64,000 nucleotides of DNA, from positions 5,642,001 to 5,706,000 of the forward strand of contig OU015567.1 of NCBI GenBank assembly GCA_907165135.1. Reading direction: 5' to 3'. The notes under the pieces are model-generated. The model saw only the letters and a program-made list of their open reading frames with translations, had not been told where the DNA came from and did not search any database. A program made the translations under genes and the position numbers. The stretch's first letter is position 1. Each line of letters begins with the position of its first letter. This stretch comes from Oikopleura dioica (Eukaryota > Animalia > Chordata). Positions 14,069 to 34,948 of the stretch are shown here, piece by piece.

Positions 14069-15035
14069 CTATTTGAAGATAAACTTCGGGTCCATGAACA
14101 TTTTATGGTCCATGATAAAGTCATGAATGGTTAGGCCCTCGACCCCGATCGCCTCGGAATGGAGCTTCAAATTCGCGCGTTTTTCAATTTTTCCTTCAGC
14201 GTCTTCCGGTTGGCTCTTGCACATCATCAGCGCTTGAAGATATTCGGAAAATCTCTCTCGCCGGGCTGAACAATTGTTCGAATTGCGAGAACAGAAAAAA
14301 AGCTTACTCATCCAGGGATTTGAGCTGTTGCGGCTTCGATTAATGAGCGGATCTTCTTCTGAAAAATATAAGAATAAAAAATCAATTGCTTCTTCAGAAA
14401 CCTGACTCAAGGAACTTGAGGCAGGATCAAGTCGTTCAAGAACCCTAAGTCAGATTTTCGTCACAGTTTTTCCATCGAAAGAAAAGAGACTCACGCTCAT
14501 TGTCGATGCAAAAAGTCATTATCTGCCCCACCGCTTCTGAAATCTTGAGTCTTTTCATGTTGAGCAGGTTCATCTCCATTTCGATGATTTTTCTTCCTTC
14601 TTCGATGACTTCTCTTTTGAGCTCCTCGAAGCAGCGGCCGTCGGGCTTGATCAGTGTCGTTTTCTCAAACAGCATTTTCGCTCTGATTCGCCGATCTGCT
14701 TGCTTAAAATCACATTTTCAACTTTGAAGAGGTGACCAGCCGGGCTCGCAAATCTGTGTTGCTAAAGGAATTCGAAGAATAGCCGCGTAGCGGCTCTTTT
14801 AAAATCCAAGCCGCATAGTGGCTTCACCGAGATCGGGAACCCAAAACAAGTTCAAAAATCCGGCCACAATAAAAAAAATCCCGCATACCTCGAATCTCGG
14901 ATCCAGCATGGTCTTGACAACTGGCTCTCGAAGACAAACTTGTCCATCCAAGTTCTCTAGAATGAGTTCTTGCGATCCCTCGCGCTTAAGAAGCTCTTTT
15001 TTACCTGGATCCATGGCGAGTGCTTCTTTACTCAA
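14069..15035 (-). CDS. Small protein with G-protein gamma-like (GGL) domain; 5' exons uncertain
   Basis: Spliced ...MEMNLLNMKRLKISEAVGQIMTFCIDNE / EEDPLINRSRNSSNPWM matches the G-gamma/GGL pattern R(L/I)K(V/I)S....L..(Y/F)C....DP(L/F)....NPW. It is followed by about 65 further residues. Confidence 0.55.
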
Positions 15036-15419
15036 AGATTATATACGCTGCGGCGATTTAATGACGGGGAAAGGGGCACAAATGACGAGAATTGATCGCT
15101 AGAAAAAGGATCAGCGCGCGAATTTCAGCACTGCGCTGGGGAAAATTAAATCGATCAAAGGGTTTTTTATCTATTAAATCATTTTTCGAATTCCTTTATT
15201 TGATCAAATGAAATAATTGGCTTTTCATGCTCGGATCTTCCGCTTTCTTCTTGATGGTAAATTTCCTCCTTGATTTCTTTTGAGCTTATGCTCTTTTTCA
15301 AGACCTGAGTCAATGTCTCCGGCTGAACTATCAATCAGTGTAAAAATGATTTATTTCGAACAACAAAAACAACAAGGATAGTCTAACCAGACAAATCAAG
15401 AAATGTCTTTCGAAATCAA

Positions 15420-16310
15420 AATGGATGACAAGAAAACTTGAATACTGTTCAAGCCTCGATCCTCCATATTCACTTATTCCAGTTCCAACCGTCTTGACTG
15501 CGGAAGAGCAATGACTTTCGAGAAGACGATATCTTTAAGCCGACTCCGGTCTCAGTTTAAACGTACCCCATGTGATTTTCCTGCAGCAAAAACAGGATTT
15601 GCAAGCGACATTCGACCAAGCGACATCGACGTCTTCCACGCTGCAGCAAAGCGCTTTGCTTCAATGCACATCATCAGTGAAGAAGAGAGTCAAAGGCCGA
15701 TCAAGACCTGCTACCACGCCTGGCCCTGGAACACGAAAGCGATCAGATCGCACTACAAAACAGCTACTTATCCCGAAAAATTGATCAAAATTTATGTTCA
15801 GTGGGGCACAATCTCGACGCCAACGACGGAAGAATTTTCATCCCTCAGAAGGCACATCGATAGAGGAAAGACTGCTGCTGGTTGACAACGACAACTCAGA
15901 ATTCGGCACTAGAGCCTTCGACGTCGCCTATAACATTATTCGCTTCTACGAAAAAATCAACTTAGATATTATCAAGGACTTCTTGAACATTCACTTGCGG
16001 GAGAAAATAAAACCAGCGGATAACGCAAATTTTCGATCGAAGCTTTAACCAAGCAGTGCACGGACTCGAATTCCTTCTAGAGCTAGAGCAAGAAATGACA
16101 AGCGTCTGGCCATATAATTTCATGGAGCAATCCGAGTTCTACCGCTCAATCGGCGTCGACGAGGAGGATTTCTGCAACTAAGTGTTCGACGTGATACGAG
16201 CAATGCTGGACGAATGCGCGAATGGGAAAGCAAGCTCCCCCTAGACCGGCCGATAAAGCGAGTTTCCAAAACGCAAGCCGCCAGCGAAATGAGAATTCAA
16301 TTTTGTTTTA
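15420..16310 (+). pseudogene. Intronless frameshifted coding-like region of unknown family
   Basis: Protein-like reading passes from ORF 15511-15885 to ORF 15794-16048 and then to a third frame (FNQAVHGLEFLLELEQEMTSVWPYNFMEQSEFYRSIGVDEEDFCN*VFDVIRAMLDEC). No family recognised. Confidence 0.35.
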
Positions 16311-16346
16311 ATTGCAGAAACAAAAATTCAGTCTTGAAAACTTCGT

Positions 16347-17300
16347 TTATAAGTAATTAAGAAGCAGAGAGAACTCTTTGAATATTTCTTTCAGAACTGC
16401 TATCACGGAACTTTGAATAGACTCCACTATTTGAGTTCGCAAAAAGGATAAATTCAAACTTTGAATTTCAAAGTTTTGAAACTGCATTTTTGTAAGAAAA
16501 TTTGCGAACTGTCCTACTGCTTCCGGGCAAAATCCATCTTTTGTGCTCCTGGCGAGGCGAATTTCCGCTGGAAGGCCTAAATCAGCAAAAACGCTTCGCA
16601 CTTTCGCACCAAATCGCTTAATCATCTGCTCGACTTCCTGGTCCGTGGGAATATGCACGGGCAGCGCGGGTCGGTCGTCTTGACTGGTCCTGCCGGCGTT
16701 ATAAATCAGCAAGCCATCGTTGCCTTCAGAGCAGTGGAGTTTCTTCGCTCGTCGCTTTTGAAACTCTTCGTGCAGTTCTATTGGGGCTGCTCTCCTAGCT
16801 GCTTTCCTTACATATCGGCTTTCTTTACTTTCTTCAATAATGACTGCATCTACCCGCAGAAAAAGACGCTCCAATGGTGACCAAATCAGATCAAGAAAGG
16901 AAATCTGAAAATTTTGAATAAATTGACAATTCTCCTCGGCGCAGTAGGTCGCGTCAGAAGTGAAGTAATCCCACGACCAGCTCACGGCAAGCCTGGTCTT
17001 TCCCTTTTCGATGATTCCTTCCGCAAAGCCGACGGAAAGCTCTCTTCTGCCGTCTTCAAGTTGATCGGCCCAGGGAGGATGCAGCCAGTTTATTTCCTTC
17101 AAGTGGCTGGCGCAGACGAGCGGGAGGATCCAGTACTCGATCGAGGTCATTTCTCGCATCTTTTCTGCGTTTGAAATGTGCTCCATTGAGAAGCTGATCG
17201 GCGCACTTTTCTTTGGTTGTTTCAGCTTCAGAAGTAGCTCCTAGAATAGCGTCAACCACGTTCCAGAGATCAGGATGCGAGTCGTAGTGGATCATTTGAA
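16347..17300 (-). CDS. Hypothetical protein (279-aa open frame plus possible upstream segment)
   Basis: Long uninterrupted ORF with normal amino-acid composition, convergent with the 15.4-16.3 kb region. No family recognised. Confidence 0.45.
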
Positions 17301-17835
17301 GCCTCTTTGCCCCTAATCGACATCGACGGCGAAATCCGCCGAAAGGGCCGAAACTGGCACAAACTTCTCAACAAGAAGTGAATCTCAGCCAAGAACCTCT
17401 CCATTTCCTCCGCTTAAAATATCTGGCAGACCAAGAAACCGATGCAACTCTGAAATTCGAACAAACAGCATGCAGCTTTTTCTGTCCTGGCAAATTTTTT
17501 ACTTTTCAAAGAAATTTCGGAAAAGCCGCTTTGCAGCTTCATTTTTGACAAAATCGCAGTTCAACTATGAATTTAAACTGTTTCAGAACCTGACTCGGGA
17601 ATTTTTGCTTTTTCCGGAAAAGCGAAAGTTTGGAAAAAGAAAACTATATTTTTTACGCCAAGTCCTTTTTTCCAGTCACCCATTATCTCCTTTTTACGAA
17701 AAAAAGGCCGGGCGACATTTTAGTCGGAGCGAAAGAAACAGCCGCAAAAATAGCCAAAAGCTTCAAATAAAACATTTTCTCTCGAAATAAAAAGCCAATT
17801 CTAGCGGCTGAAAATCCTCCTTTTTCTCCGAGAAG

Positions 17836-20680: not shown

Positions 20681-21833
20681 ATTAGACAAGAAAAAGGACA
20701 TTCCACTCATCGACGCTCACAAAGAATACGTCAGCCAAAGCGCGGAAAGATACTCAAAAACAGAAATGAAACAGCTCGACTTCCACATCAACAACTTGGA
20801 ATACGAGCCTTTCTAGCGTTTCAGCGCTCAATTGGGACCAGAACGAGCGTTTTCCGCAATTTGGCGGGGATCATGCGATCGTGACATACGGATTTTCTGA
20901 TGTTTTGGAAGAATTGTCGAAACCGCTGAATACAGAGTTTGAAATTTTTCGGTTAACCGGTGGCGAGCATTGATCATTCTGGGGAAAAGGTGGTCGTCGA
21001 GACGACTCATGGGGAGAAAATTGAGGCGGATAGGATTGGATACAGATAAATAATAGATCTTGAAGCCGCAAGTGGCTGACCAATTTTGTAAAATAGCTTG
21101 AAATAAGACTTCTGTATCCATTTCAAAGATGCGTCGTGTCAATCCCACTCGCCCTCATGAAAAAGAAAACCATCAATTTCACCCCCGACTTATCTCAGCG
21201 AAAATGGCGCGCTGTAGAAAACATCGGCGCCGGCCTGATAGAAAAATGCCTCCTCCGCTTCGATTCAAAATGGTGGAGTTACAAGATCGGTGGCGCTGAT
21301 TTCTTTGGCTCCATCAGCGTTTCTGGCTCCGACTCAGGCGTCGAAGCTGATGATGAACACGATACGTCGGGAATTTTTAATGTGTTCTACGATATCAATC
21401 GCCTGGGAGTGATCATTTTACGCTCATGTCGATCGCAGCTGGAGCTTCGCTTGATATTTATCATTCGATGAGTGATAAACAGCTCGTTTCCAGTGCGATA
21501 GCGACGCTTCAAGGCAAGAGTCAATTAACAAGCTCCTTTTTACTTGAATTTTCGCCATTTTGTGACTCTTAAAAAAGAAATCTTCAAAGAAAACACGAGC
21601 CCAGAGCCCCTGAGCTTCCACATTACACGCTGGGGAAAAGAAGAATACTCCCATATGAGTTATTCTTTTATCAAACTCGGTTCAACCGGAAAAGACTACG
21701 ACAAAATGGCGGAACCAGCTTCCGATCGATTATTTTTCGCTGGAGAAGCCACCCATCGGTACGTTAAAGCGCATCTCTCTATAAAAAATGTTTGATAGTG
21801 TAGTAAAATGATCAGTAAAATGGTGTTTTACTG

Positions 21834-22496
21834 ATGGACTGCGACATCGAGAAAGAAACTTATATATCCGAGTGTATTCCTCTTTTCCACCAGGTGAGTA
21901 TAACTTTTGTTGCGCAGTTGTGATCTGAATTGTCAGGGCATTTCGCTGAAGCCAATGTTCCAAGTAGCGATGAGAACGGTAGAAGACTACTGCGAGCGGA
22001 ACAATCTGGCCATCGCTGGCTACTACGAGTCGCCCGAAATCGTCAAGAGCGCCACGCCATCGCAGTACGCGGAGAAGGTCGGCGACAAGCTCCGGGAGCA
22101 ATTCAAGGATGCCTTCCTTCTCCACAACATTTGGCAAGAAGACTCCAAGTTCGCCCTGAGACCGTTTGTCAAAGAGGTGCGAAATTTTATCGATTCTTCT
22201 AGAATCTGTGTTCATTGATTTGCATTTAGTCTGGAAAGTGGGTGTACTCTTCAAACAAGCTCAGCTTTGAGAACGAAAACGTTTTCAAGACCGTCGCTCA
22301 GCTGCATAAAGCCGACTTCTGCCTCGAACTTCAAGTAAGAACTTCTATTATTTTGCGCACGCATGGCCACTTCTAGGACTTTGACTGCTACCTCGATAAC
22401 TTCACGAACGACTGGACAAACAGATCTCTGCAAGAAGTGATTATGCTTGTGGACGCGCAAACCGAGCACCAAGACGCTAGTATAAAGGCGAAATGA
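21834..22496 (+). pseudogene. EMC8: EMC8/9 (ER membrane complex, neighbour-of-COX4 family), 5'-truncated
   Basis: Exons YISECIPLFH / GISLKPMFQVAMRTVEDYCERNNLAIAGYYES / DFDCYLDNFTNDWTN match EMC8/9. The conserved N-terminal KM.LH..KYP...VNG segment is absent. Confidence 0.8.
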
Positions 22497-22661
22497 CACG
22501 AATTGAACAATGGCGCTACTATTTCTACCCTTTCCTTCCCAAAATGTCTCACACCGAGCTTTACTTTCTTAGATTATTTCGAATTTGTGCAATCTTCAAA
22601 CATGTTGTGTGCGCTCCGTTAATTCAATAGCGTCGCTAAACTGATTTCGCTTGTTCAGAAG

Positions 22662-23124
22662 ATGTTGAACAGAACTCTCGCTCGACAGATCGTCTCCGTC
22701 AGAAACTTCCGATCTGGCTCTTTCCAGGTAATTCGCTTTAGAAAGAGGAGTTACTGATCTGCGCTTGTAGAACAAGTTCAACCAAGTCCCACTAAAGAAG
22801 GTCTACTGGGGCTCTGCCAAGCTCTCTGGTGAAGCTTTCCTCGCTGCCGGCGCCATTTTCTTCTTCTGGGCCTTTGATCGACTCGCTCGAGCTGACTTCC
22901 TTTACTCCAAGTTCCACATGTCTGCCTCTCACTTCCAGATGGGTACGCTTCGTGTTTGAGCTGGCACCAACTGACAAAATCGTTAAGATAACATCATCAT
23001 CGTCGATGGCAAGTACCGATACATCCCCACCAAAATGCACCCCGCCGAGCACGAAAAGGATGTCTCCTACATGTCCAACTTCACCGAGTACGACTGGACC
23101 CCTACTGATGGCAAGGATGGCAAG
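22662..23124 (+). CDS. Small putative mitochondrial single-TM protein, 3' end fused to UBA1
   Basis: Three GT-AG-spliced exons: [22 protein letters not shown] / [43 protein letters not shown]... / [12 protein letters not shown]... The Arg-rich acid-free N-terminus resembles a mitochondrial presequence. No own stop codon. Confidence 0.5.
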
Positions 23125-24110
23125 GTCTCCGAGTCCTACGGCTCTTCCCGCGATGCACAAGAGAAATCCATTCCCATCTGTACTTTGAAAAATTTCCCAA
23201 ATGCCATCGAGCATTGCCTTCAGGTACCTTTTGAGCCTATTTTGGTCAAAGTATGACCTTTTTTAGTGGGCGCGAGATAATTTTGAAGGACTCTTTACTG
23301 GACAGGCAGGCTCTGCGAAACAGTTCCTTTCCGATCCCGCCGACTTGTCGCAAAAACTGAGAAGCTGCCCGGCAACGAGCCAATCACCTCTGCTCAGGGA
23401 GTCGTTGAGTCAACTCGTTGACTTCCTCATCGACCAAAAACCAAATGACTTCAATGACTGCATCGAATGGGCGCGCCACAGATTCGAAGAGAACTACGTC
23501 ACCACCATTCTCCAGCTTCTTCACCGCCCTCGTCGCCGGTCTAATCTCTGCCGAGCTTTACAAGATCGTCAACGGAATCGACGACATTGAAAAGTATCGA
23601 AATACGTTCATGAATCTCGCGATTCCAGCGTATTCCTTCTCCGAGCCCATGACTCCACCAAAGGTGAAACTGAAAGTATGGCTCTTTTATACAAAACAGT
23701 TTTAGAACACTTATTTTGGAGACCAGCACTGGACCCTCTGGGATCGATTTGACATCGACGGACGAAAAGAAAATGGCGGAGAGATGACAATTGGCGAGCT
23801 CCTCGACCATTTCAAGAATGATAGGAAGCTTGAGGTCCAGATGCTGAGCTCTGGAGTGACACTTCTCTACTCCTTCTTCCTCAACCCGCCGAAGAAGAAG
23901 CAGGACCGACTTGCCATGACTGTCAGGTAAGCTCTCTACACTTGTTACTGCAGCTAAATGCTCATTCTTTCTAGTGAGGCAGTGAAAACAGTCGACAAAA
24001 AAGAAATCGGCGCGCACGAGCGATACCTCGTGCTCGACGTCTGCTGTAATGACATGACAGAAGCCGAAGAAGATCAAGACGTTCCATATCTTCGCTATTG
24101 TTTCCGATAG
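23125..24110 (+). pseudogene. UBA1: UBA1 ubiquitin-activating enzyme E1, C-terminal half only, internally deleted
   Basis: [42 protein letters not shown] (active-site Cys region), DCIEWARHRFEENY, ALVAGLISAELYKIV, WTLWDRF, MLSSGVTLLYSFF and VLDVCCND...DVPYLRY*. There is a frameshift at about 23346, an insertion at 23409-23421 and a large deletion at about 23523. Confidence 0.95.
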
Positions 24111-24417
24111 TTCAAAGGTTGAATAAACCAATTGAAAAACATGAAAATTATAAACAGAAACTCCCTTTTTCGATTTTGTGCATTCATACCGCGCTTACTT
24201 GTTACTTCTGCACTTCTTCATGTAAAACACGGCCTGTTTAAATTTAGCTGCAATTTCCCAAGAAGATACATTGAAAAATTACACACCGTAGGCCATTTTT
24301 ATCTTAGTACTATAAATCATTGATTTATGGAAGATATTTATGGAAGAAAATTGAAATAAAATATGGGAGAAAGGATCCCATATTATTTTCTTCAGACAGT
24401 GCGCTATCGGATTGAAA

Positions 24418-27400
24418 ATGAAACTAAAACAGAGTGATGAATCCCCTTCGTCGGATGATAATTCGAGAGAGCGTGTCATTGACGAGGGTGAATCTTCAGA
24501 AATAGGTAAAATTAAAGCCAGTTGACGTATTTTCATGCAATTCCGCGTAGATATCCCCCCGCTGGAACGAGCTGCTGAGTTTTCGCAGCCTTCACCCCAC
24601 TTCAAATCGCCGGAGAAGACTTCTAACAAATCATCCAACTCAAAGGTGGCCTCAAATCTTGATCCCGACGAGCCAAGTAAGCGATCAAATAAATATTGAA
24701 AATAAACTCGAATTATAGCGCCGATTCCCCAACGAAAGACAAGTTCTCCAAAGGAATCAACTGAGATTCCCCCTCGAATACCGTTAGCGGAGCTTCTCCA
24801 ATCTCAGAAGAGCACCGATGGCCGGGAAACTCAGGAAACTCAACCTTCTCAACTGAGCCGATATGAGATGATGGAGCGAGCTGCTGAGTTTTCTCAAAGA
24901 ACTAGTCAAGAAGAACTACTCAATGATCAGGTGCCTTCGGATCCAGAGATCTCCCTCTCCGTCAGCGGAGAACTTTTCGATAATGAGGTGCCTTCGGATC
25001 CAGAGATCTCCCTCTCCGTCAGCGGAGAACTTTTCAATGAGGAGCTGCAGCCAATGGATACTACGGAGATTTCCCAGCAAGAAGAAAAGAAAGCGAACTC
25101 CTCTCAAGGCTCCTCCGTCTATGAAACGCCTGAAAAGAGTCTACCGAAAACGCCGAGTAAGGCTGATCAATCAGCACCCGCAACACCTCCTCAGCCCTCG
25201 AGAAAGCTTCGGCGAAGCCTCTTCAATGAAAATCAGGAAGAAGAACCGATGGATTCCCCGGAGATAATCATGGCGTCCTCAGGAGACACGACGGTGAGAT
25301 CAAAAAAGGTCGAAGATTCCTGGTCGCAGGTTTCTGGAGAGACGCTACGAGAGACTGAAGGGAGAAAAAGGAGAACTCACGATGCGCTGAACTTATGCGC
25401 CGGGAAGTCTCAAGAAGAAAGAAAGAAGAAGTCACAAGAAGGGATAAACCAGACCCAGCGAGTGGGCGATCTTTTAAACCACACAGCGCTTGCTCTCGAC
25501 TCACAACAGTCAACCCAAGCAACTCAAGCTCGACAAGAGTCAACATCAGCAACTCAACTTCAACCTCAAGAAGAGTCACAAGGGACTAATGAAAAATATT
25601 TTACGCCTCCCACTTCTCCAACCTTGGAGAAAGCCTCAGCCACGCAGAAGACTTTCGACGAGGATTTAGATGACGATTACTTTGCGAAGCTCAAATCGCC
25701 GAAAATTAACAAGCAAGCAGATCAGGCTAAACAGCAAAAAAGAGTTAACAGAAAAATGCCGAGATCGAGAGCAAAACCAACGCGTGATGAGGTCAAAGAA
25801 TCGGTGGCTAAAGCCTGTCGAAAATTACAAGCTGGCGGTATTAGTGGACGTCTGGAATTCGCGAGGGCTTTTATTTTAAGAAGAAACCGAGCACGAGATT
25901 CGAGCGATCCCTTGAATCGAGAACTCGAAAATGCGACTTCTTGGGAGCCAAAAGTACCGAATGCGAATTTTTCTCAAAAAAGAGTTAACAGAAAAATGCC
26001 GAGATCGAGAGCAAAACCAACGCGCGACGAGTTGGATAAATCTTTGGCTAGAGCCCTTCGAAAATTACAAGCTGGCGGTATTAGTCGACGTCTGGAATTC
26101 GCGAGAGCTTTCACTTCAACAAGATACCGACCACGAGATTCGAGCTTGAATCGAGAATTTGAAAAAGCGATTTCTTGGGAGCCAAAAGTGCCAAACGTGA
26201 ATTTTTCGAAGCCCGTTCCAGGATCATCAAGCCGTTTCAGAAAGCCTCTTCCAGTAGCGGAAAAGCCTGCAAAAAAAAACCGGGACCTTCGAAATCTAAA
26301 GCTTCAAAATCGCAAAGTCAGGAACGCTCGCAGCCACGAGAAGAGCAGGAGTCAGCTCATAACTGGTCGCAGCAAGTTCTGTTCGATGAATCTGCGGAGG
26401 ATCGACAAGCACTATCGCCTGAACATGATCAGTCCCCACCCGCGCCAATTGACAGAGAGGACGTTCGCGAATCTATGTTTCCCACCTCAAACAAGAGAAA
26501 GCTTCAGACTCCTGAAAAGGAAGCGCAGGGCGAAGCAAGCGCGAAAGATCACGCAGCGAAAAGGAGCAAGCACGAGAAGGAAAATATAACGCCTAAGAAA
26601 AGCGCTTCAAAGCCGACGATTCTCAAGCCAGCTGTGGATATCACCATTGCTCGTCGTCCAGGAAGAGATATTCAACGAGCAACTTCCTCACCGAAGCCTA
26701 ATCCTGCCTCGGTGAGAACATCGTCGCGACCGAATATCCGACCACCGCCACCACCACCGGTCCCTGCTACGAGAGGCCCTGCTCCTCCACCACCAACTGG
26801 ACCAACTTTTCAGCCTCGAGCAGCTACTCCAGTCAGTAGGAGAGCTGGAAGAGGATGTATGGTCCAGGAAGATGTCCTGAGCGAGATTTCGGACTTGTCT
26901 TCTGCATTTGATAATGACAGTCCAGTTAGAGGAGTCGGAAAGATGCAGCAAAAGAGTGCGAAACTGAGGCATGACGAACCAACGTGCAGCAAGAATTTAA
27001 CACCTCCAGCGATGCCACCAGATGCTGATCTTTCTAGCTTCTTGAACTCGAGCGAGGATGAGGAAGTTGACACATCGGAAGTTTCAGAGATTTCAGGCAT
27101 ATTCGACAACACTGCTAACGTCACCAATCATACGTCCGAGAGAAACGTTGCAGTCACTAATGGTACCTCCGAACAGCCTGAGCCTGCGTTTTCTGGCTCT
27201 TCTTTAGATGTTTCCTCCAGAAGGTCGGCACGAAAGGACGATAAAGGCTCTTCAATTGCTGATGCTGTAAAAAGACGACGGAAAGAGAAGGTAACGATTT
27301 GTAATCATGAAAAAGTATTCTAACTTTACCTTAGTCTGACGAGTCCGCCAGTGAAGTGTCAGTCCAACCAGCTTCCAGCTTCAAGCCTTACAAGGTAAAC

Positions 27401-28065
27401 ACACTTCAACTTCTAGCGCTCATTGAATAATTTCCTAGTGCCCAGAGGCGAACTGCGAGATGGCCTTTGTAACATCTAAGGATTTGACGAGACACAGGCG
27501 GTACAAACACACCCACGAAAAACCGTTCAAATGCACTTTGTGCGAATACGCTTCCGCCGAAAAATCAAATCTTCGTCGCCATTTGAAGTCAGTTCAACAT
27601 AGAATACTAAAAAAACTTCGTTATTTATTTTATTAACCCTAACCCCTAACCCTAACCAACCCTGGATAAAAGTTTTTCAGAACTCACTCGGGCGAAAAGC
27701 CCCACGAGTGTCCGCACTGCAAGGCGCGATTTACGCAGAACAGCAGTCTCAAAGTGCACGTCATGCAGCAGCACACGAAGACCGCGCCGAAGTTCGAATG
27801 TAAGTAACAAAAATAAGTTATTTGTTGTTGATTTCAATTCCGCGTTTTAAGGCGAAATTTGCCACACGATGTTTGGCCGAAAGTCCGACTTGAATGTTCA
27901 CTTGCGCAAGCAACATTCTTATCAAGAGGTAACACCGGTTCTCGTTCTTTTTGTTTTGTTTATCGCCGTTTCGTTTAGATTCCCATGCAATGTCGCTACT
28001 GCGAAGAACTCTTCCACGACAGATGGTCGCTCATGCAGCATCAAAAGACGCACCGCTCCAAATAA
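24418..28065 (+). CDS. CTCF: CTCF-derived C2H2 zinc-finger protein with five fingers and a long disordered N-terminus; one homopolymer frameshift at about 26271-26279
   Basis: Spliced C-terminus [140 protein letters not shown] carries CTCF-diagnostic strings ([35 protein letters not shown]). All introns are GT-AG and in frame from ATG 24418. Confidence 0.85.
24931..26210 (+). repeat. In-frame tandem duplications in the CTCF-like N-terminus: 57-bp unit (19 aa) at 24931/24988 and about 240-bp unit (about 80 aa) at 25741/25981
   Basis: Directly visible repeats [16 protein letters not shown] x2 and [18 protein letters not shown]...SWEPKVPN x2. Confidence 0.9.
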
Positions 28066-28293
28066 TGGCGACCCACGGGTGAAGGAAAAATACTAAACCC
28101 CTTTCCTTCTTCTTCACTGTATATAGTTCACACATCACCTCACTTTTATACTCTTAATTCACTGCCTTCCTTTATTTTTTCATTACTGCCTAACTATGAT
28201 TTTAAATTAACGTCTTTTCAATATTAAAAATCTTTTGAAAAATTTAAATACTGCCAAATCGGAAATTTCAATAAACTGACATGATAAAAAAGT

Positions 28294-28915
28294 GTGTATG
28301 AGCCTTCTGAGGATTCGTTTGTCTTTCTTGATGGCATTGAAAAGGAACTTCAGGATCAATGTTTAGGCAAGAAAGTCAGATACAGAAGCATGTTTTGTAG
28401 CGCTTGTTGATTATTTCCACAGAAAAGCCTGGTCTAGCAGTTGAAATCGGGGGTCATTTCATGTGCCTTTGCGAGTTGGACAAAAAGCTACATTCTTTCT
28501 TTTGACATCAACGAGTTATGTTCCGAATGCACGAGTAAAAATGCAAAGAACAATTCACTTATAGACAGCGCCGTAGACAACGCGGGTAGTTGCCTTCGTA
28601 CAGGTCTATTCGATTTTGTCTTGCTAAAGCCTCCGTATGTCGTGACAACCAGTGAGAAGCTCCACAAACCACCAGAAGAGCAAGATCTGAGTGCTTCATG
28701 GAACGGTGGAAATAATGGAACAGAACTTTTATTATCCAGTCTTTTGCAAAAGCACTGAAGTTGTTGAATAACTCTGGTTGCTTGTACCTAATAGCGATAA
28801 GAGAAAACATTCTGGAAGAAATACGCGAGTTTTTGAATGAACGAAGTTATTTGATGAAGATTGTTATTGAAAGAAAACCTGGGCGAGAGTATTAATACTT
28901 GCTCAAGGTTACTCA
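28294..28915 (+). pseudogene. N6AMT1: N6AMT1/HEMK2 methyltransferase pseudogene
   Basis: VYEPSEDSFVFLDGIEKEL, AVEIG..VISCAF, DIN, (N>K)PPYV, WNGGNNG and GCLYLIAIREN follow the family. The SAM-binding GxGxG is collapsed at 28449-28453 with a frameshift, NPPY reads KPPY (28627), and a premature TAA lies at 28893. Confidence 0.85.
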
Positions 28916-28940: not shown

Positions 28941-30966
28941 ATGCGGCAAAACGAAGCTGCGGGGGACAATATGGACCTGGATGTTGATGAAGAAGGTAAT
29001 TTGTTGTTTTCTTGTCGTAAATTTCGACATTTTAACTTGATTCAGTCTTCCGGAATAGACTTATGAGGCGCCGAAGCGTTACTTCTATCTCTCGCGGTAG
29101 ATTTTCGAAAAGAAACACTCATTCGGTGCAAAATCACGTTCATTAATTAGTAGATGCCTGAAATTTAATAGAAATTCGGGCACCAATACTCACTTCACGG
29201 TGCTAGCTAGGGCTCTAGAAATCATAGAATTCGCCTCTCCCACATTTTTTACGACATTCACTCGAGATACTTTTTCATCCTTTTCGACTGATAAACTCAA
29301 ATTCAGGAAGCAGTGATGAAGGAAGTTCGCTCAGTTTGGGTTCCCCGAAGCATGAAAATCGTACAAGGTAACTCTAACATCTACTCACAAACAGGCTCAT
29401 CGTTCCATTATTTAGCTTTTTCATGGGTCAGCCGAAGCCATCAGACACTGCACTAGAAGATCGATCGCCCCCTCCTCAGCTTCGAAATCGCTCTATCGAC
29501 GTAAACACTCCTCGGCGACAACAAGACGCGGAAGAGGAGCTCGAAACCGCTGCAAAATGCTCCGAACTTCTCTACGAAAACATCGGCCATTACTTCCGGC
29601 TCTTCGCCGACGATCAGGATATGAATGCTCGACTTTTTACTTCGTCGAGCCAGATTATACTCACGGCGAGTATTCTCCTCATAATGAAAATTTCTCCCAA
29701 GACGGATTTGGGCGAGACCAGATTGTGGAAGAAAATCAAAGCGAAAAGGAAGACGACATTGTTTTCGAACATCAGCAGACCAAGGAGGAGCAGAAAAAGA
29801 CGATTCACGACTACGATTTCGAGCAAATGTCGTGTGAAGGTACCTTTTTGAAATAAGAAACAATCTCTTAGGTGGGTTTTGAATTTAATCGGGCAAATTT
29901 GCTCCTGCTCTCTCTTTGACCTTGAGAATATAAACCTATTGTATCATACATGTATGGATAGAACGTTCTCTTCACCTGAGCCAGAAAAGGTTTCTCTTTC
30001 GCCAGTTTCGAGCCCTAGAAAGGTCTCACCGAAGAAGATTCTTTTCGGAGCCCCCGCAAGCCCGGCGAAAAGTGACAGCACGCTAGAAGAAGACTCGATA
30101 GGAAAAGGTCGAAAGTACATTTATAAGATTTTCTTACTAAGCAACTAAAAAGTTCTTTTCTTTCAACCTTTCGAAAGAAATCACTGTCATCGAGAATCCC
30201 AACCGGGCTTTATCAGATACATCTGAAACAGAGCCGCTGACAAAACCGGAAGACGATGAAGTCTTCGAACGAACCTCTTCCCCTGCTTCACTTTCCCCAA
30301 TCCGTTCTTCGTCAGTTTCGCCTGGACGAAGACCGAGACCTCCAGCTGGACTTGGCCTTGGCTTGAGAGCCACTCAAAGCTTATCTTCGAGAGGCCGCTC
30401 GGATTCAAGACGTGCGAAGAATCTCTTGACAAAGGTTTATATCTAGCCAAAGAAGCGGTCAATAAAAGTGATTTTAGAATAACACGGCGAATTTCAAACC
30501 TCTTCTTCTCCAAAACATCTCAGGAGGAGCAAAGAAAGATCGAATATCCGCCGCAGAAAGACTCAAAGACTTTGAGTCAAAGTTCAACCTGGCCAAACTC
30601 TTCAGGATCTTTACAAGCCAAAATCAGACTCAGCATCAAGTCCGAATCGGTCAAAATCGGAGTCATTAACAACTGATCAAAGGTATCACCAAGCCTTTTT
30701 TCTAAACGATTACAGTAATTTTAGCCCGAAAAGACGGAACAAATCGAAAAACCGCTTCAACTCGGCCCACCGCCTGGCCTCTATCGTTGAAGAAAAAGAC
30801 CTCCAAGCGGCGAAAGAATTCTATCAAAACAACTACTGTAATAGAAACGGAGACAACTGTAACGACTCTAGCGCTACTGCGAAAACGGAAAACTGTACTA
30901 CGCTTAATGACAACTGTACGAGCTCAGAACAACCCGCCGCCGATCAAAAGAATCAGACAGCAGTTT
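28941..30966 (+). pseudogene. Multi-exon Ser/Pro-rich gene of unknown family, apparently frameshifted
   Basis: GT-AG-bounded exons can be chained from ATG 28941 through 29046-29096, 29308-29368 and 29417-29839, with a frame break in a T-run near 29635. Later exons are fragmented. Confidence 0.35.
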
Positions 30967-31606
30967 GATTGCTTTTTATTTAATTAGTAGTAATTATTAT
31001 TTAAATCTTATCCTGTTTCATTTTTTTTCTTTTTATCGTTCGAGTACTTTTTGTATATTTGAAATTCGCAACATAAAATTTTCCGTGCCTTGTTAAAACA
31101 GAGAAAAACTAGCGCCTAAACTTTTTCAACTCTTTATTTCCATCCTCGATTCTTGATACATAAAAATTAATTTGCTTATATAAATAATAAATGTTGAATA
31201 ACTGACCTTTCATTTCTGTCGCCTGCTCTTTCCCTAAATTACAAAAGATTTTACATTTGCTTCTCTTAAAAACATCATCGTTTCAGACCTTGCTTCTTGA
31301 AATCATTCCGTACTTTCCATATTGAAATTAATAAATTATTTAAAAAATCACCCTCTTTTCTTTTTTACCTTAATTTCAAGTAATGAAATGAGTTAACTTC
31401 TGAGACGACCTTCTTTACCTAAAGCTCGTCGCATTGCTCATTTTACAGTTCCCTGGGGAATTGTGCGGGCAGTCATTTTGTATTGATTTCGCACCTCCGA
31501 CTTTCCCCTCTGGCCGCACATCTTATTTTATTATTATATTTTTCTTTTTATTCAGAAGCGAAGTGAGACTGAGGGAGTAGAGACGCCTCTGTTTCGCTAT
31601 CTAAAA

Positions 31607-34600
31607 ATGTCGTCGATTCTTCGGTCGGAAGAGATGTGCCTAGCACAGCTCTTCTTGCAGGTAAGAAAACTCAAGTTTAGAGCGATGATTTTCTTCAAAT
31701 TTCGATAAAAATTGGCTGTCGTTTAAATTTTTTCCTAGTCCGATGCTGCTTAATAAGCAGTGCTTATTCCTGCATTTCTGAGCTTGGCGAACTTGGTCTG
31801 GTTCAGTTTCGCGACTTGAACGCCGATGTCTCCGCTTTCCAGCGCAAATTCGTTCCAGAACTTCGCCGCTGCGACGAGATGGAAAGAAAACTTCGTTACT
31901 TGGAAGAAGAGCTTCAAAAAGCCGATATTCCGGTCATCGACAACAATGAGAGTCCCGAAGCTCCCTTGCCTAAGGAGACGCTTCCTTTAGAAAACGATCT
32001 GGAACAGCTGGAGAAGCAGATGCGTGAAGTCTCGCAGAATCAAGAACAGCTGAATAAGAACTTTTCCGAGTTGACGGAGCTCAAGCACGTTCTCCGCAAA
32101 ACTTAGGTCAGTCTGAGCAAGCAGCCATCTTTCAACCCCTTTTCAGAGCTTTTTCGAAGAAGCCCAAGACTTTGTAGCGCAACGACCGGGCGCTGTCGAT
32201 CCCGAAACTGGCGAAGAAGAAAGAATTCGGTTACTGAACAGGCCCGCTCACTTCAGATCCATTAAAAACTTTCATATTGTTATTTCTCATGTTTCACGCG
32301 GCTCTGATTTGCTGCACGAGGAAAAACGCATTTGGAAAAAAAATCGGCCAAGGCGTTTTTTCTTTCTTAATTTTATTGTCACGTGCATGTTCTTATTTGA
32401 TGATTACCCATTCGAAGTATTCCCCGAGCATGAAACCTTCAACTATATTTGGTGAATTTAGATTAATCTCCTCGTATTCGTCTTGTAAGTCTGTATAAGT
32501 CTGATTGTTCATTCTTCGTTTCTATTTTGGGCCGATTAGGTGCTGGCTTAGCCGCTCACAATTGACGGTACTAGTCGCTTCCGCTTGAAAATTATGTGTA
32601 GGGGAAAAGGTGCTAAACAAATCACGTATCAGTATCAATTTTTACGCAATAACTAGACTAGTGGGTAGATCATCGGCCCTTGCCACATCTTCTTCGGATT
32701 GTAAGTGAGCCCAAGAATAGCACTGGACATGAGGAGATGTCTACCAATCCTCTTCGACTTGGATTCATTGCTGGAGTCATTGTCCGAGAGCGCATTCCGC
32801 TCTTTGAGAGAATTCTCTGGCGAGCCTACCGAGGTTAGAATTTCACTTCGATCGATTTGTTTTAAGAAATGTTTCTTAGGAAATGTATTTTTGCGTCACA
32901 TCGAAATCGATACACCCCTGAAAGACCCTGTTACTGGACATGAAGTTCACAAGTCCGTCTTTATCATCTTTTTCCAAGGTATTCCCCAAAACATCGATTC
33001 ACTCTTGCAAGAGTTTTTAGGTGAACAACTCAGAAGCCGCACAAAGAAAATCTGCGAGCCGCTCAAAGCCTCGATCTATCCCTGCCCGGAAAACCCTCAA
33101 GAGCGCCGCGAAGTCGCTATGAACGTCATGACCCGTATCCAAGACCTCGATCAAGTTCTGAAAACGACGAACGAACAGCGAAACCGCATCCTCGCCCAGG
33201 TCGCGCGAAACATTCGAGTATGGTTCATCAAGGTTCGAAAAGTCGCTGCGATTTACCTCTCACTGCATATGTTCTCCGTTGATCTTGGCCAACGATGCCT
33301 GATTGGCGAAATCTGGTGCCCAGTAGCTGAGATTGATCGGATTCAACTAGCCTTCCGTCGTGGAACTGAGCGCTGTGGAGCTTCTGTCAACTCCATTCTA
33401 CACCGAATCAAGACGAACATGACCCCTCCGACATATTTCCGCACGGACAAATTCACCACCGGTTTTCAGGCCATCATCGAAGCCTATGGCGTAGCTGACT
33501 ACCGCGAAATTAACCCTGCTTTCTTTACCATCATCTCCTTCCCGTTCCTCTACGGAGTTATGCTCGGCGACATGGGTCACGGAATCATCATGGCTTTGGT
33601 AGCTGCATTCATGTGTTGGAAAGAAAATGAAATTGGCCGGAAAAAGGACTTGAATGAAATGATCGAGATCTTGTTCAGCGGACGCTATATCATTCTGCTC
33701 ATGGGCTTGTTCTCCACATACGCCGGTTTTATCTACAACGATATTTTCTCCAAATCTTTGAATATTTTCGGCTTTTTACTGGACTGTCAGTGACCAGCCG
33801 GGCATAGAAGATTGGCTGAAAACTGCTCCCGCTGAATCTACGATCCAATTGAACCCGAACTACATCTCTGACGGCCCGTATCCTTATGGTATGGACCCGA
33901 TTTGGCAGTTGTCTAGCAACAAGATCGTCTTCATCGACTCGTTCAAGATGAAGGGCTCGGTTATCTTGGGAGTAACTCACATGTGCTTTGGCTTGGTTCT
34001 TTCTTACTTTAATCACAAGCACTTCAACGATCACGTGACTATTATTTGGGAGTGGATTCCTCGATGTCTTTTCATGGGCTGCATTTTCGTCTATCTTTGC
34101 TTGACTATCTTCATCAAGTGGATTTTCTAGGATGCAACGACTTCTGGCAGCGCTCCTTCCTTGTTGATCAATCTTATTGGCATGTTCATGTTAAAGACTC
34201 CAACGAAGCAGGACAACACATGGGTCTACGGTTCCCTGAATGCTGATGGAGAGGCGACAGCGCAAGGATTGGTCCAAAAGTTCTTGCTTTTCATCGCTTT
34301 TGCCAGCTTGCCAGTTATGCTCTGTGCCAAGCCGTACATCAAGTACAAAGAGTGGAAGGACCGACAAAATCGGAGCACTGCTTACTTTGGCGGCGTTCGA
34401 GTTGAAATCGAGGGCAACGACGATACAGAAGGAATCCTCGACGGAGACGAGCTCGCGCAAGAAAACACTCAAGAACAGCCTCAAGAAGAAGTTGAGGAGT
34501 TCGATATCGGCGGAATGGCATTGCCATTCATGCATGTAAAATTTTTACAGATTATTCACACGATCGAATTCGCGCTTGGTTGCATTTCGCACACTGCTTC

Positions 34601-34948
34601 TTACCTTCGTCTCTGGGCCCTGTCCTTGGCTCACGCTGAGTTGTCGGAAGTCCTTTGGAACATGGTTTTGAAAATGGGTCTTTCTATGTCTAGCTCTGGC
34701 TCTGTCGGTGCGATCATGAGCTATTTGGTTTTCTGGGCTTTTGCTTGTCTTTCTGTTAGTATTCTCCTTTGCATGGAAGGTATCAAAGCTCTTATCAGGA
34801 GCAGTTTTAATAATTTTTTCAAGGTCTTTCTGCATTCTTGCACGCGATGCGTCTCCACTGGGTCGAGTTCAGCGACAAGTTCTACCACGGAGAAGGAATC
34901 ATCTTCAAACCTTTCTACTTCCAGTCAATTTTGTGCGGCGAAGAGTAG
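31607..34948 (+). pseudogene. ATP6V0A: V-ATPase V0 subunit a pseudogene
   Basis: MSSILRSEEMCLAQLFLQ, FQRKFVPELRRCDEMERKLR, YREINPA, GDMGHG, FIDSFKMK, SHTASYLRLWALSLAHAELSEVLW and [11 protein letters not shown]. Lesions: 14-nt insertion 31753-31766, TAG 32104 (expected Gln), frameshift about 33775, TAG 34128 (expected Tyr). Confidence 0.95.

Follow-up and report, generated by a model that had tools for sequence, protein, structure and literature searches.

Does the five-finger gene at positions 24418-28065 (plus strand) of this 64,000-nt window of Oikopleura dioica DNA represent the CTCF of its lineage, a CTCF paralog with a DNA target of its own, or the debris of a duplication? The window, which here denotes the whole stretch analyzed, lies on contig OU015567.1 (its letters 14418-38065 are the same as OU015567.1 5656418-5680065), and the locus corresponds to the annotated gene chr2.g5486 of O. 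dioica OKI2018_I69 (public protein P0002, 942 aa). We put at roughly 0.55 the probability that chr2.g5486 is one copy of a young, lineage-restricted, chimeric, CTCF-derived family in Okinawa-lineage O. dioica, with this copy probably broken and the family re-specifying its contacts. The base of the family would be a fast-evolving, low-complexity scaffold of ~940 aa, to which a cassette reaching from the linker between zinc fingers 2 and 3 (ZF2-ZF3) to ZF8, copied from the eight-finger tunicate CTCF, would have been joined in three loci; at a further locus, in the pseudo-autosomal region (PAR), the same scaffold would have been joined to a TRF-type Myb domain. The copies would swap segments with each other. 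The window copy would have lost ZF5 by an exact 84-nt deletion and also one letter of the scaffold open reading frame (ORF), and its reference version would be unable to join scaffold and fingers in one frame. The family as a whole may be a working DNA-binding module under re-specification, in which the zinc ligands are kept and the base contacts repeatedly changed. Its function, expression, and binding motif are inferences.

The last four exons of chr2.g5486 encode five canonical C2H2 fingers with all 20 zinc ligands intact (Table 1). A phmmer search of this cassette against PDB returned CTCF chains as the top nine matches, headed by human CTCF (E = 8.3e-84) versus ZNF568 (E = 2.7e-54) as the best non-CTCF protein. 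The match to CTCF was both the best and collinear, and the closest database proteins were tunicate CTCFs, with identities of 70-74% to the appendicularian CTCFs P0156, P0157, and P0159 and ~50% to vertebrate CTCF. HMMER alignment to human CTCF placed cassette residues 1-64 on ZF3-ZF4 and residues 28-146 on ZF5-ZF8; since the second finger aligns to both ZF4 and ZF5, it is a ZF4/ZF5 hybrid, which ends in the linker normally found after ZF5 and is interrupted by the 93-nt intron 27588-27680. Finger map and PDB alignment confirmed the assignment made by an earlier, sequence-only reading of this locus (ZF3, a ZF4/ZF5 hybrid, ZF6, ZF7, and ZF8, with a stop just after ZF8), and the helix strings quoted there, including the retained RKSDL, were correct. 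The nearest CTCF was of the L003 type, and the alanine in CPEANC is common to both. Compared with CTCF transcripts, the cassette differs at 55-72% (L003) or 82-87% (L008) of synonymous sites and at only 3-7% of nonsynonymous sites, which argues for purifying selection during most of its history. An exhaustive profile search with the 49-aa ZF3-4 exon was uninformative for CTCF relatives, because it was dominated by long poly-finger proteins whose scores sum over fingers.

Between two TGEKP-type linkers, the window copy falls exactly 84 nt (28 codons) short of the related gene chr2.g5496 described below; ZF5 was thus removed from it in register, from linker to linker. A processed (retro-copied) pseudogene was considered and rejected, since four introns, all GT-AG, are found in or at the cassette. 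One of them, intron 27588-27680, has an array of telomere-like units in place of its middle part, some tens of bases before the exon with the 84-nt ZF5 deletion; the chr1 and g5496 copies have no such units in the homologous 65-nt intron. Telomerase-assisted repair of a break would be one possible reading of this arrangement.

The exon map gives chr2.g5486 eight exons and seven introns, all GT-AG and 42-93 nt long, a length typical of the species. The conceptual product of ~1089 aa has an X at a single frame break and is otherwise free of stops. Its N-terminal 942 aa, the scaffold, are of low complexity and rich in S, P, E, R, A, and K, with no Pfam domain, which agrees with the disordered N-terminus of about 950 aa described before. 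No [YFW]x[YFW] motif, and hence none of the YxF type, occurs anywhere in the conceptual protein; the cohesin-binding motif is YDF in human CTCF and YDY or YEF in tunicates, and the earlier observation that YDF is missing stands. Two internal duplications of the scaffold, once called fresh, are real, but an identity of 87-91% between their units does not make them particularly fresh. They came from a separate repeat search, Tandem Repeats Finder having found nothing over 24400-28100, and the ~240-nt unit of the longer one is present once in the chr2.g5496 protein. The public chr2.g5486 model contains a 449-nt intron that shifts it into the downstream frame before the break and leaves it out of register with the paralog proteins; this intron is probably a gene-prediction artefact.

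Searches with the scaffold revealed that it is not unique: three further annotated loci of the same assembly carry it (paralog proteins P0001, P0167, P0003, and P0004), and the family thus has at least four loci, with scaffold DNA 88-99% identical between the window and its paralogs. The chr1.g1380 copy has 96-99% identity over window 20997-25691 and 82-96% beyond, and the 5′ half of the window gene matches it at 99%. The finger cassette ZF3-8 ends three loci (chr2.g5486, chr2.g5496, and chr1.g1380), and the PAR copy, which has the start of the junction exon 27335-27394 in common with them, runs on from there into the TRF-type Myb domain with which it ends. In the genome sequence, chr2.g5496 has an intact six-finger cassette from ZF3 to ZF8. 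In the chr1 copy (fingers at L002 13020-13616, downstream of the annotated chr1.g1380), ZF3 and ZF4 are fused in register over 93 nt and ZF5-8 follow, a five-finger layout of its own; the loss of 1 nt creates a stop inside the fused finger. Since the window gene is on the autosome chr2 and its paralogs are on chr1, chr2, and the PAR, and none is in a sex-specific region, the suggested sex linkage finds no support. The sequence-only reading was right about a paralog in kind, but it overlooked that this is a multi-copy chimeric family in which the copy at hand may be dead. The re-specification signal at the family level, set out below, appears to be undescribed.

The public gene models of all copies contain doubtful introns. 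The ZF8 of g5496 (L006 18265-18360) is intact and ends in ...HQKTHRFNKNK, and the public 1375-aa model splices from ZF8 into downstream sequence, which yields an apparently broken eighth finger. In the chr1 annotation, the protein is ended by reading into an intron, and ZF5-8 are called as a separate 127-aa gene. The chr1 copy also has no intron at the place of window intron 27800-27851, between ZF6 and ZF7. We considered whether its ZF5-7 are a fresh copy of CTCF, given the one intron fewer and the ancestral-like residues, and rejected this, as the coding DNA is 94-95% identical to the paralogs and 82-88% to CTCF transcripts.

The window gene resembles the chr1 copy in its 5′ part and the PAR copy in its 3′ tail, which argues for exchange of segments between family copies. 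Past its own stop, the gene retains the last codons and the 3′ untranslated region (UTR) of the PAR Myb exon; the chr1 and g5496 copies end in another tail, which is short and A/T-rich. A PAR-type tail after ZF8 points either to recombination between members or to an ancestor with the finger cassette upstream of the Myb exon. All four family genes are followed by the first part of an N6AMT1/HemK2-like methyltransferase gene, with 92-97% identity, and the duplicated unit therefore reaches into the next gene.

Whether the window gene could be the CTCF of its lineage depends on what tunicate CTCFs look like. Those returned by a search with the finger region of the window gene all end shortly after ZF8, namely, the CTCFs of Ciona (P0200, 634 aa), Phallusia, Styela, and Clavelina and several planktonic tunicate transcripts. 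The eight fingers of Ciona CTCF were shown by 3′RACE (2026 preprint, bioRxiv 10.64898/2026.10.19.759930). Loss of ZF9-11 is thus a tunicate trait, inherited and not new; ZF1-2 and ZF9-11 are indeed absent from the window gene, as first described, but the latter absence is tunicate-wide. Oikopleura has transcripts for a CTCF with eight fingers (P0156 and P0157; ZF1-8). All three appendicularian proteins have ZF1-8, the N-terminal domain, and a Y-D-Y, Y-E-Y, or Y-D-F motif (Y-D-Y in P0156). The N-terminal domain of P0156 is 65% identical to that of Ciona CTCF (E = 3e-46), and three different runs contain 3.2-kb contigs, presumably transcripts, with an uninterrupted ORF for this protein. By BLASTP, residues 1-795 of P0002 had no similarity to the P0156 N-terminus (E > 3), and the block TTTVQFIAV...AAEQAGI of tunicate CTCF was not found in the window gene. 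Neither was a finger upstream of 27439 that could be ZF1 or ZF2 (Pfam matched none in the N-terminal ORFs) nor a complete ZF3-7 core with the contact residues invariant in tunicate CTCFs, as ZF5 is deleted and five specificity positions are changed. Because Oikopleura transcripts encode a normal eight-finger CTCF with a conserved N-terminal domain, chr2.g5486 is, on these comparisons, a CTCF paralog and not a reduced CTCF ortholog.

The contact residues of the cassette carry the argument for re-specification. Helices of the retrieved tunicate CTCFs are near invariant: TSGELTR in ZF3, EISKLRR in ZF4, DSFHLKR in ZF5, Q(H/R)GS(L/V)KM in ZF6, RKSDLNV in ZF7, and DRW(S/N)LMQ in ZF8. Against this tunicate parent, the window copy has five changes at specificity positions (-1, 2, 3, and 6), which are G2K and E3D in ZF3, K3N in ZF4, and G2S and M6V in ZF6. 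The proposal that its helices are rewired thus holds for ZF3, ZF4, and ZF6, but part of the difference from vertebrate CTCF, most clearly in ZF6 (QHGSLKM in appendicularian CTCF versus QSGTMKM in vertebrates), is the tunicate state. Derived residues were counted only at columns where P0156, P0157, and P0159 agree. On this basis, the window cassette has 14 changes, 5 of them at specificity positions (p = 0.04) and none at ligands, and in the g5496 cassette 11 of 28 changes fall at specificity positions (p = 0.001), with the ligands again unchanged (p = 0.013). Pooling the three cassettes places 15 of 40 derived states at the 24 specificity positions, with 5.8 expected (p = 2.7e-4, from small numbers and with no codon-mutability model), and 0 of 40 at the 24 ligand columns (p = 0.002). 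Some positions changed repeatedly and independently across copies: position 3 of ZF3 (E to D and E to G), position 6 of ZF6 (M to V and M to R), and position -1 of ZF5 (D to S and D to N). This pattern of substitution, as read from the sequences, suggests a working, re-specifying array of the kind seen in fast-evolving zinc-finger genes rather than plain decay. If translated, the product of chr2.g5486 would read a site of ~12 bp resembling the CTCF core, without the ZF5 triplet and with shifted ZF3, ZF4, and ZF6 triplets. Lacking both the CTCF N-terminus and the YxF motif, it would be unable to halt cohesin.

The copy in the window nevertheless seems to have a lesion. Where the sequence-only reading had noted nine A residues in place of ten, the frame switches exactly at the run, and the three paralogs have 10 letters, in frame (AAAAGAAAA plus A, T or G); the window is one short, apparently the G. 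Contigs carrying an additional letter here accounted for 37% of the depth in DNA runs X1 and X5, a share within or slightly above the range of 11-36% for other paralog-specific indels (g5496 and PAR differences at 24385, 25237, 25976, and 27477/27483); this comparison left out 27631-27660 as repeat. The check in reads that had been proposed for the run gave an extra letter in 37% of the depth, in tables that mix the paralogs, and nine letters in most of it. Most simply, the paralogs would be the source of the extra-letter contigs, and the rest, this locus included, would have nine letters. We regard the one-letter lesion as real with a chance of about two in three, and chr2.g5486 is probably a recently disabled copy. 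Scaffold omega between copies is 0.5-0.9, and the best-supported scaffold variants in two DNA runs are near neutral (21 nonsynonymous and 9 synonymous); by these counts the scaffold sequence is barely constrained, though open for 942 codons.

A different view of the same data is that chr2.g5486 itself is a functional, neofunctionalised paralog encoding a five-finger protein with a shorter target. The nine-letter run would then reflect a segregating allele or a mistake in the assembly, or the 449-nt intron would be real. Such a copy would account for the intactness of 20 of 20 zinc ligands and seven of seven splice sites, for ~1089 codons stop-free except at the single break, and for the excess of changes at specificity positions (5/14; p = 0.04). 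Homopolymer errors are plausible in this assembly, the extra-letter contigs occur in two independent DNA runs, and the annotated 449-nt intron has GT-AG ends. However, three paralogs suffice to explain these contigs, and the 37% share leaves most of the depth at nine letters; every paralog has, as the letter missing here, a G within the run, and its loss would be no simple homopolymer miscount; and the annotated intron puts the model outside the family frame upstream of the run. With the near-neutral scaffold variants and no RNA support in the runs examined, we consider a functional window gene possible but unlikely.

A stronger version of the preferred reading gives the family a role. Its members would be competitors of CTCF at promoter-proximal sites, or binders of mobile elements with CTCF-like motif arrays, and their contacts would be under diversifying selection. 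We hold this to be quite doubtful; if true, it would amount to an arms race like that of the KRAB zinc-finger proteins (KZFPs), built from a CTCF module in a chordate without KRAB-ZNFs.

At the other extreme, the whole family could be non-functional segmental-duplication debris, in which an accidental fusion with a CTCF fragment was copied along with decayed neighbors and never functional. Every copy is accompanied by a decayed UBA1 fragment or other partial genes, every public model requires odd introns to stay open, the chr1 cassette has both a frameshift and a stop, omega between copies is 0.5-1.0, and family transcripts are missing from the Logan and JGI proteins and contigs. Yet neutral decay does not predict 0/40 ligand changes together with a 2.6-fold excess at contacts and repeat hits at the same sites. 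Neither does it fit that the cassette, at a synonymous difference (pS) of 0.55-0.72 from the nearest CTCF, differs from it at just 3-7% of nonsynonymous sites and has thus been constrained for most of its history, or that long ORFs are kept in four diverged copies. We find this account very doubtful. That chr2.g5486 is the lineage's own CTCF, radically cut to five fingers, is hardly credible, for although two length-limited searches found no annotated full-length CTCF-like OKI2018_I69 protein, eight-finger Oikopleura transcripts with the conserved N-terminal domain exist, the window gene lacks that N-terminus and ZF1-2 and is present in several diverging copies, and an O. dioica CTCF was used for chromatin immunoprecipitation (ChIP) with a custom antibody (PMC5240408).

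Several points weigh against a re-specifying family with a broken copy in the window. Between the window and g5496 cassettes, dN and dS are both 0.074 (25 nonsynonymous and 5.8 synonymous changes), and this omega of 1.0, from small counts, fits neutrality as well as diversification. Read-table contigs of the four loci are indistinguishable. The OKI2018_I69 assembly was made with Canu from Nanopore reads and polished with 150-bp reads (PMC8008620); polishing is weak in duplicates that are 95-99% identical, and single-letter breaks could thus be assembly errors. A C-run at 24769-24773 varies among the copies in length alone (C5 in the window gene, C6 in g5496 [L006 ~6355], and C4 in chr1 [L002 ~10350]), which is likely an unpolished homopolymer error in duplicated sequence, or else a set of real frameshifts. 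The ~100 nt after this run are the same in the window, g5496, and chr1, and the public models put introns of 52 nt (g5496) and 113 nt (chr1) there. The eight-finger CTCF of OKI2018_I69 itself was not retrieved, no annotated protein of this assembly resembling full CTCF having appeared in the two length-limited searches, and its presence rests on transcripts of uncertain lineage. Finally, at a likeness of at least 90%, the two RNA runs (X12 and X13) gave no usable coverage of the gene apart from a few reads on the ZF7-8 exons and a cross-match at 26719-26759; both runs are probably from another cryptic lineage and uninformative on family expression.

Table 1. Positions of the features of chr2.g5486, its paralogs, and the adjoining sequence (window numbering unless a locus handle is given)
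Feature	Position	Strand	Remarks
Exons of chr2.g5486	24418-24505, 24551-24676, 24719-27290, 27335-27394, 27439-27587, 27681-27799, 27852-27928, 27979-28065	+	exon map made here
Scaffold part, 942 aa before KPYKCPE	24418-27394	+	common to paralogs on chr1, chr2, and PAR
Tandem duplication, 57 nt (19 aa) x2	24912-25025	+	91% identity; repeat search
Duplication, ~240 nt (80 aa) x2	25735-26207	+	87-88% identity; repeat search
GT-AG intron of the public model, 449 nt	25792-26240	+	
Frame break, 9 A	26271-26279	+	frame switch exactly at run
Small exon with scaffold/CTCF junction	27335-27394	+	ends KPYK, the CTCF ZF2-ZF3 linker
Finger 1 (CTCF ZF3)	27439-27510	+	tunicate C-X4-C spacing; helix TSKDLTR (parent TSGELTR)
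Finger 2 (ZF4/ZF5 hybrid)	27532-27687	+	ZF4 body; helix EKSNLRR (parent EISKLRR)
Telomere-like units, three, CCCTAA type	27637-27655	+	at 27637, 27644, and 27650; in intron 27588-27680
Finger 3 (ZF6)	27709-27774	+	helix QNSSLKV (parent QHGSLKM)
Finger 4 (ZF7)	27799-27916	+	helix RKSDLNV, unchanged; split by intron 27800-27851
Finger 5 (ZF8)	27991-28053	+	helix DRWSLMQ, unchanged
Stop codon of chr2.g5486	28063-28065	+	
3′ tail	28068-28226	+	homologous to last codons (GDPRVKEKY, stop) and 3′UTR of the PAR.g10079 Myb exon, L007 14528-14680
N6AMT1-like gene start	28293-28787; L002 13733-14241; L006 18487-18647; L007 14856-15013		
chr1.g1380	L002; OU015566.1		upstream neighbors as in window: UPF0172 gene and 386-aa UBA1 fragment
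chr2.g5496 (P0167)	L006; ~29 kb past window end		inverted; carries PDZ domain
PAR.g10080 + PAR.g10079	L007; OU015568.1		scaffold and PDZ; Myb domain at end

Searches for expression of the family gave little. The stretch was present in no indexed RNA run searched. About 90 reads of the two RNA runs match only a Pro-rich 40-nt stretch (26719-26759) at 90-95%, with unrelated sequence on both sides, and by this pattern they stem from another gene, one that has a poly-proline segment like this. Protein searches, Logan, and JGI yielded no family transcripts or proteins, while ordinary CTCF transcripts did turn up; this is a weak negative. In metagenome scans, a pattern across the A-run found nothing, and a protein-guided scan found ordinary CTCF transcripts only.

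Compared with known systems, the window gene is closest to tunicate CTCF itself (P0200, P0156, P0157, and P0159). The two are collinear from KPYK to ZF8, have the C-X4-C spacing in ZF3 and identical ZF7 and ZF8 helices, and end shortly after ZF8. They differ in that the window gene has no ZF1-2, conserved N-terminal domain, YxF-type motif, or ZF5, and in that it carries five specificity changes and an unrelated 942-aa N-terminus and is multi-copy. Outside amniotes, CTCF normally exists as one gene, whose ZF3-7 contact residues belong to the most strongly conserved ones of bilaterians. CTCFL/BORIS, likewise a CTCF paralog but of amniotes, also combines CTCF fingers with unrelated flanks and has no cohesin-anchoring N-terminus. 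BORIS is a single, testis-expressed gene with all 11 fingers and near-identical contact residues, whereas the family of the window copied only ZF3-8, loses fingers, alters contacts, and exists in several copies; a full array with parental contacts was not found in it. BORIS and the Oikopleura family arose independently. Like KRAB-ZNF and PRDM9-type genes, the family keeps ligands and fold, changes at -1, 2, 3, and 6, loses fingers in register, and turns over copies. Unlike them, it has no KRAB, SET, or other effector domain, descends from CTCF and not from a tandem ZNF cluster, and has only five or six fingers.

The PAR paralog calls for a comparison with TRF1 and TRF2, since the best-populated PDB matches of its Myb domain, carried on the same scaffold, are TRF2 and TRF1 (E ~1e-5), and the window gene keeps, past its stop codon, the remnant of a Myb exon. 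No TRFH dimerisation domain was detected, in contrast to the TRF proteins, and the window copy has no Myb domain. In PAR.g10079 (P0004; L007 12502-16027), the C-terminal Myb matches in PDB are mostly to TRF2, TRF1, zebrafish Terfa, and yeast TBF1, and the gene may encode a telomere-repeat-binding protein of unusual architecture.

No paper on CTCF paralogs in O. dioica was found in the literature. For work on Oikopleura, an antibody against the finger region of CTCF, or a motif scan based on it, may also catch these paralogs. A CTCF module that was copied, fused, trimmed by finger, and altered at its contacts would be a natural experiment on how specificity drifts once the constraints of the ortholog are gone, and chr2.g5486 matters mainly as a record of this DNA-reading module being copied and re-tuned.

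The neighborhood of the gene had been described as a decayed block, which is true at least on the upstream side. The UBA1-like gene there is a fragment that begins at about residue 600 of the enzyme and jumps from ~728 to ~895 of human UBA1 with a change of frame (window 23267-23702), and the same 386-aa UBA1 fragment model is annotated on chr1. Downstream, a V-ATPase subunit a gene is annotated as two models of 315 and 515 aa, at window 28941-32106 and 32737-34948 (14524-17689 and 18320-20531 in L001 coordinates), a split that fits the insertion in this gene suggested by the sequence-only reading.

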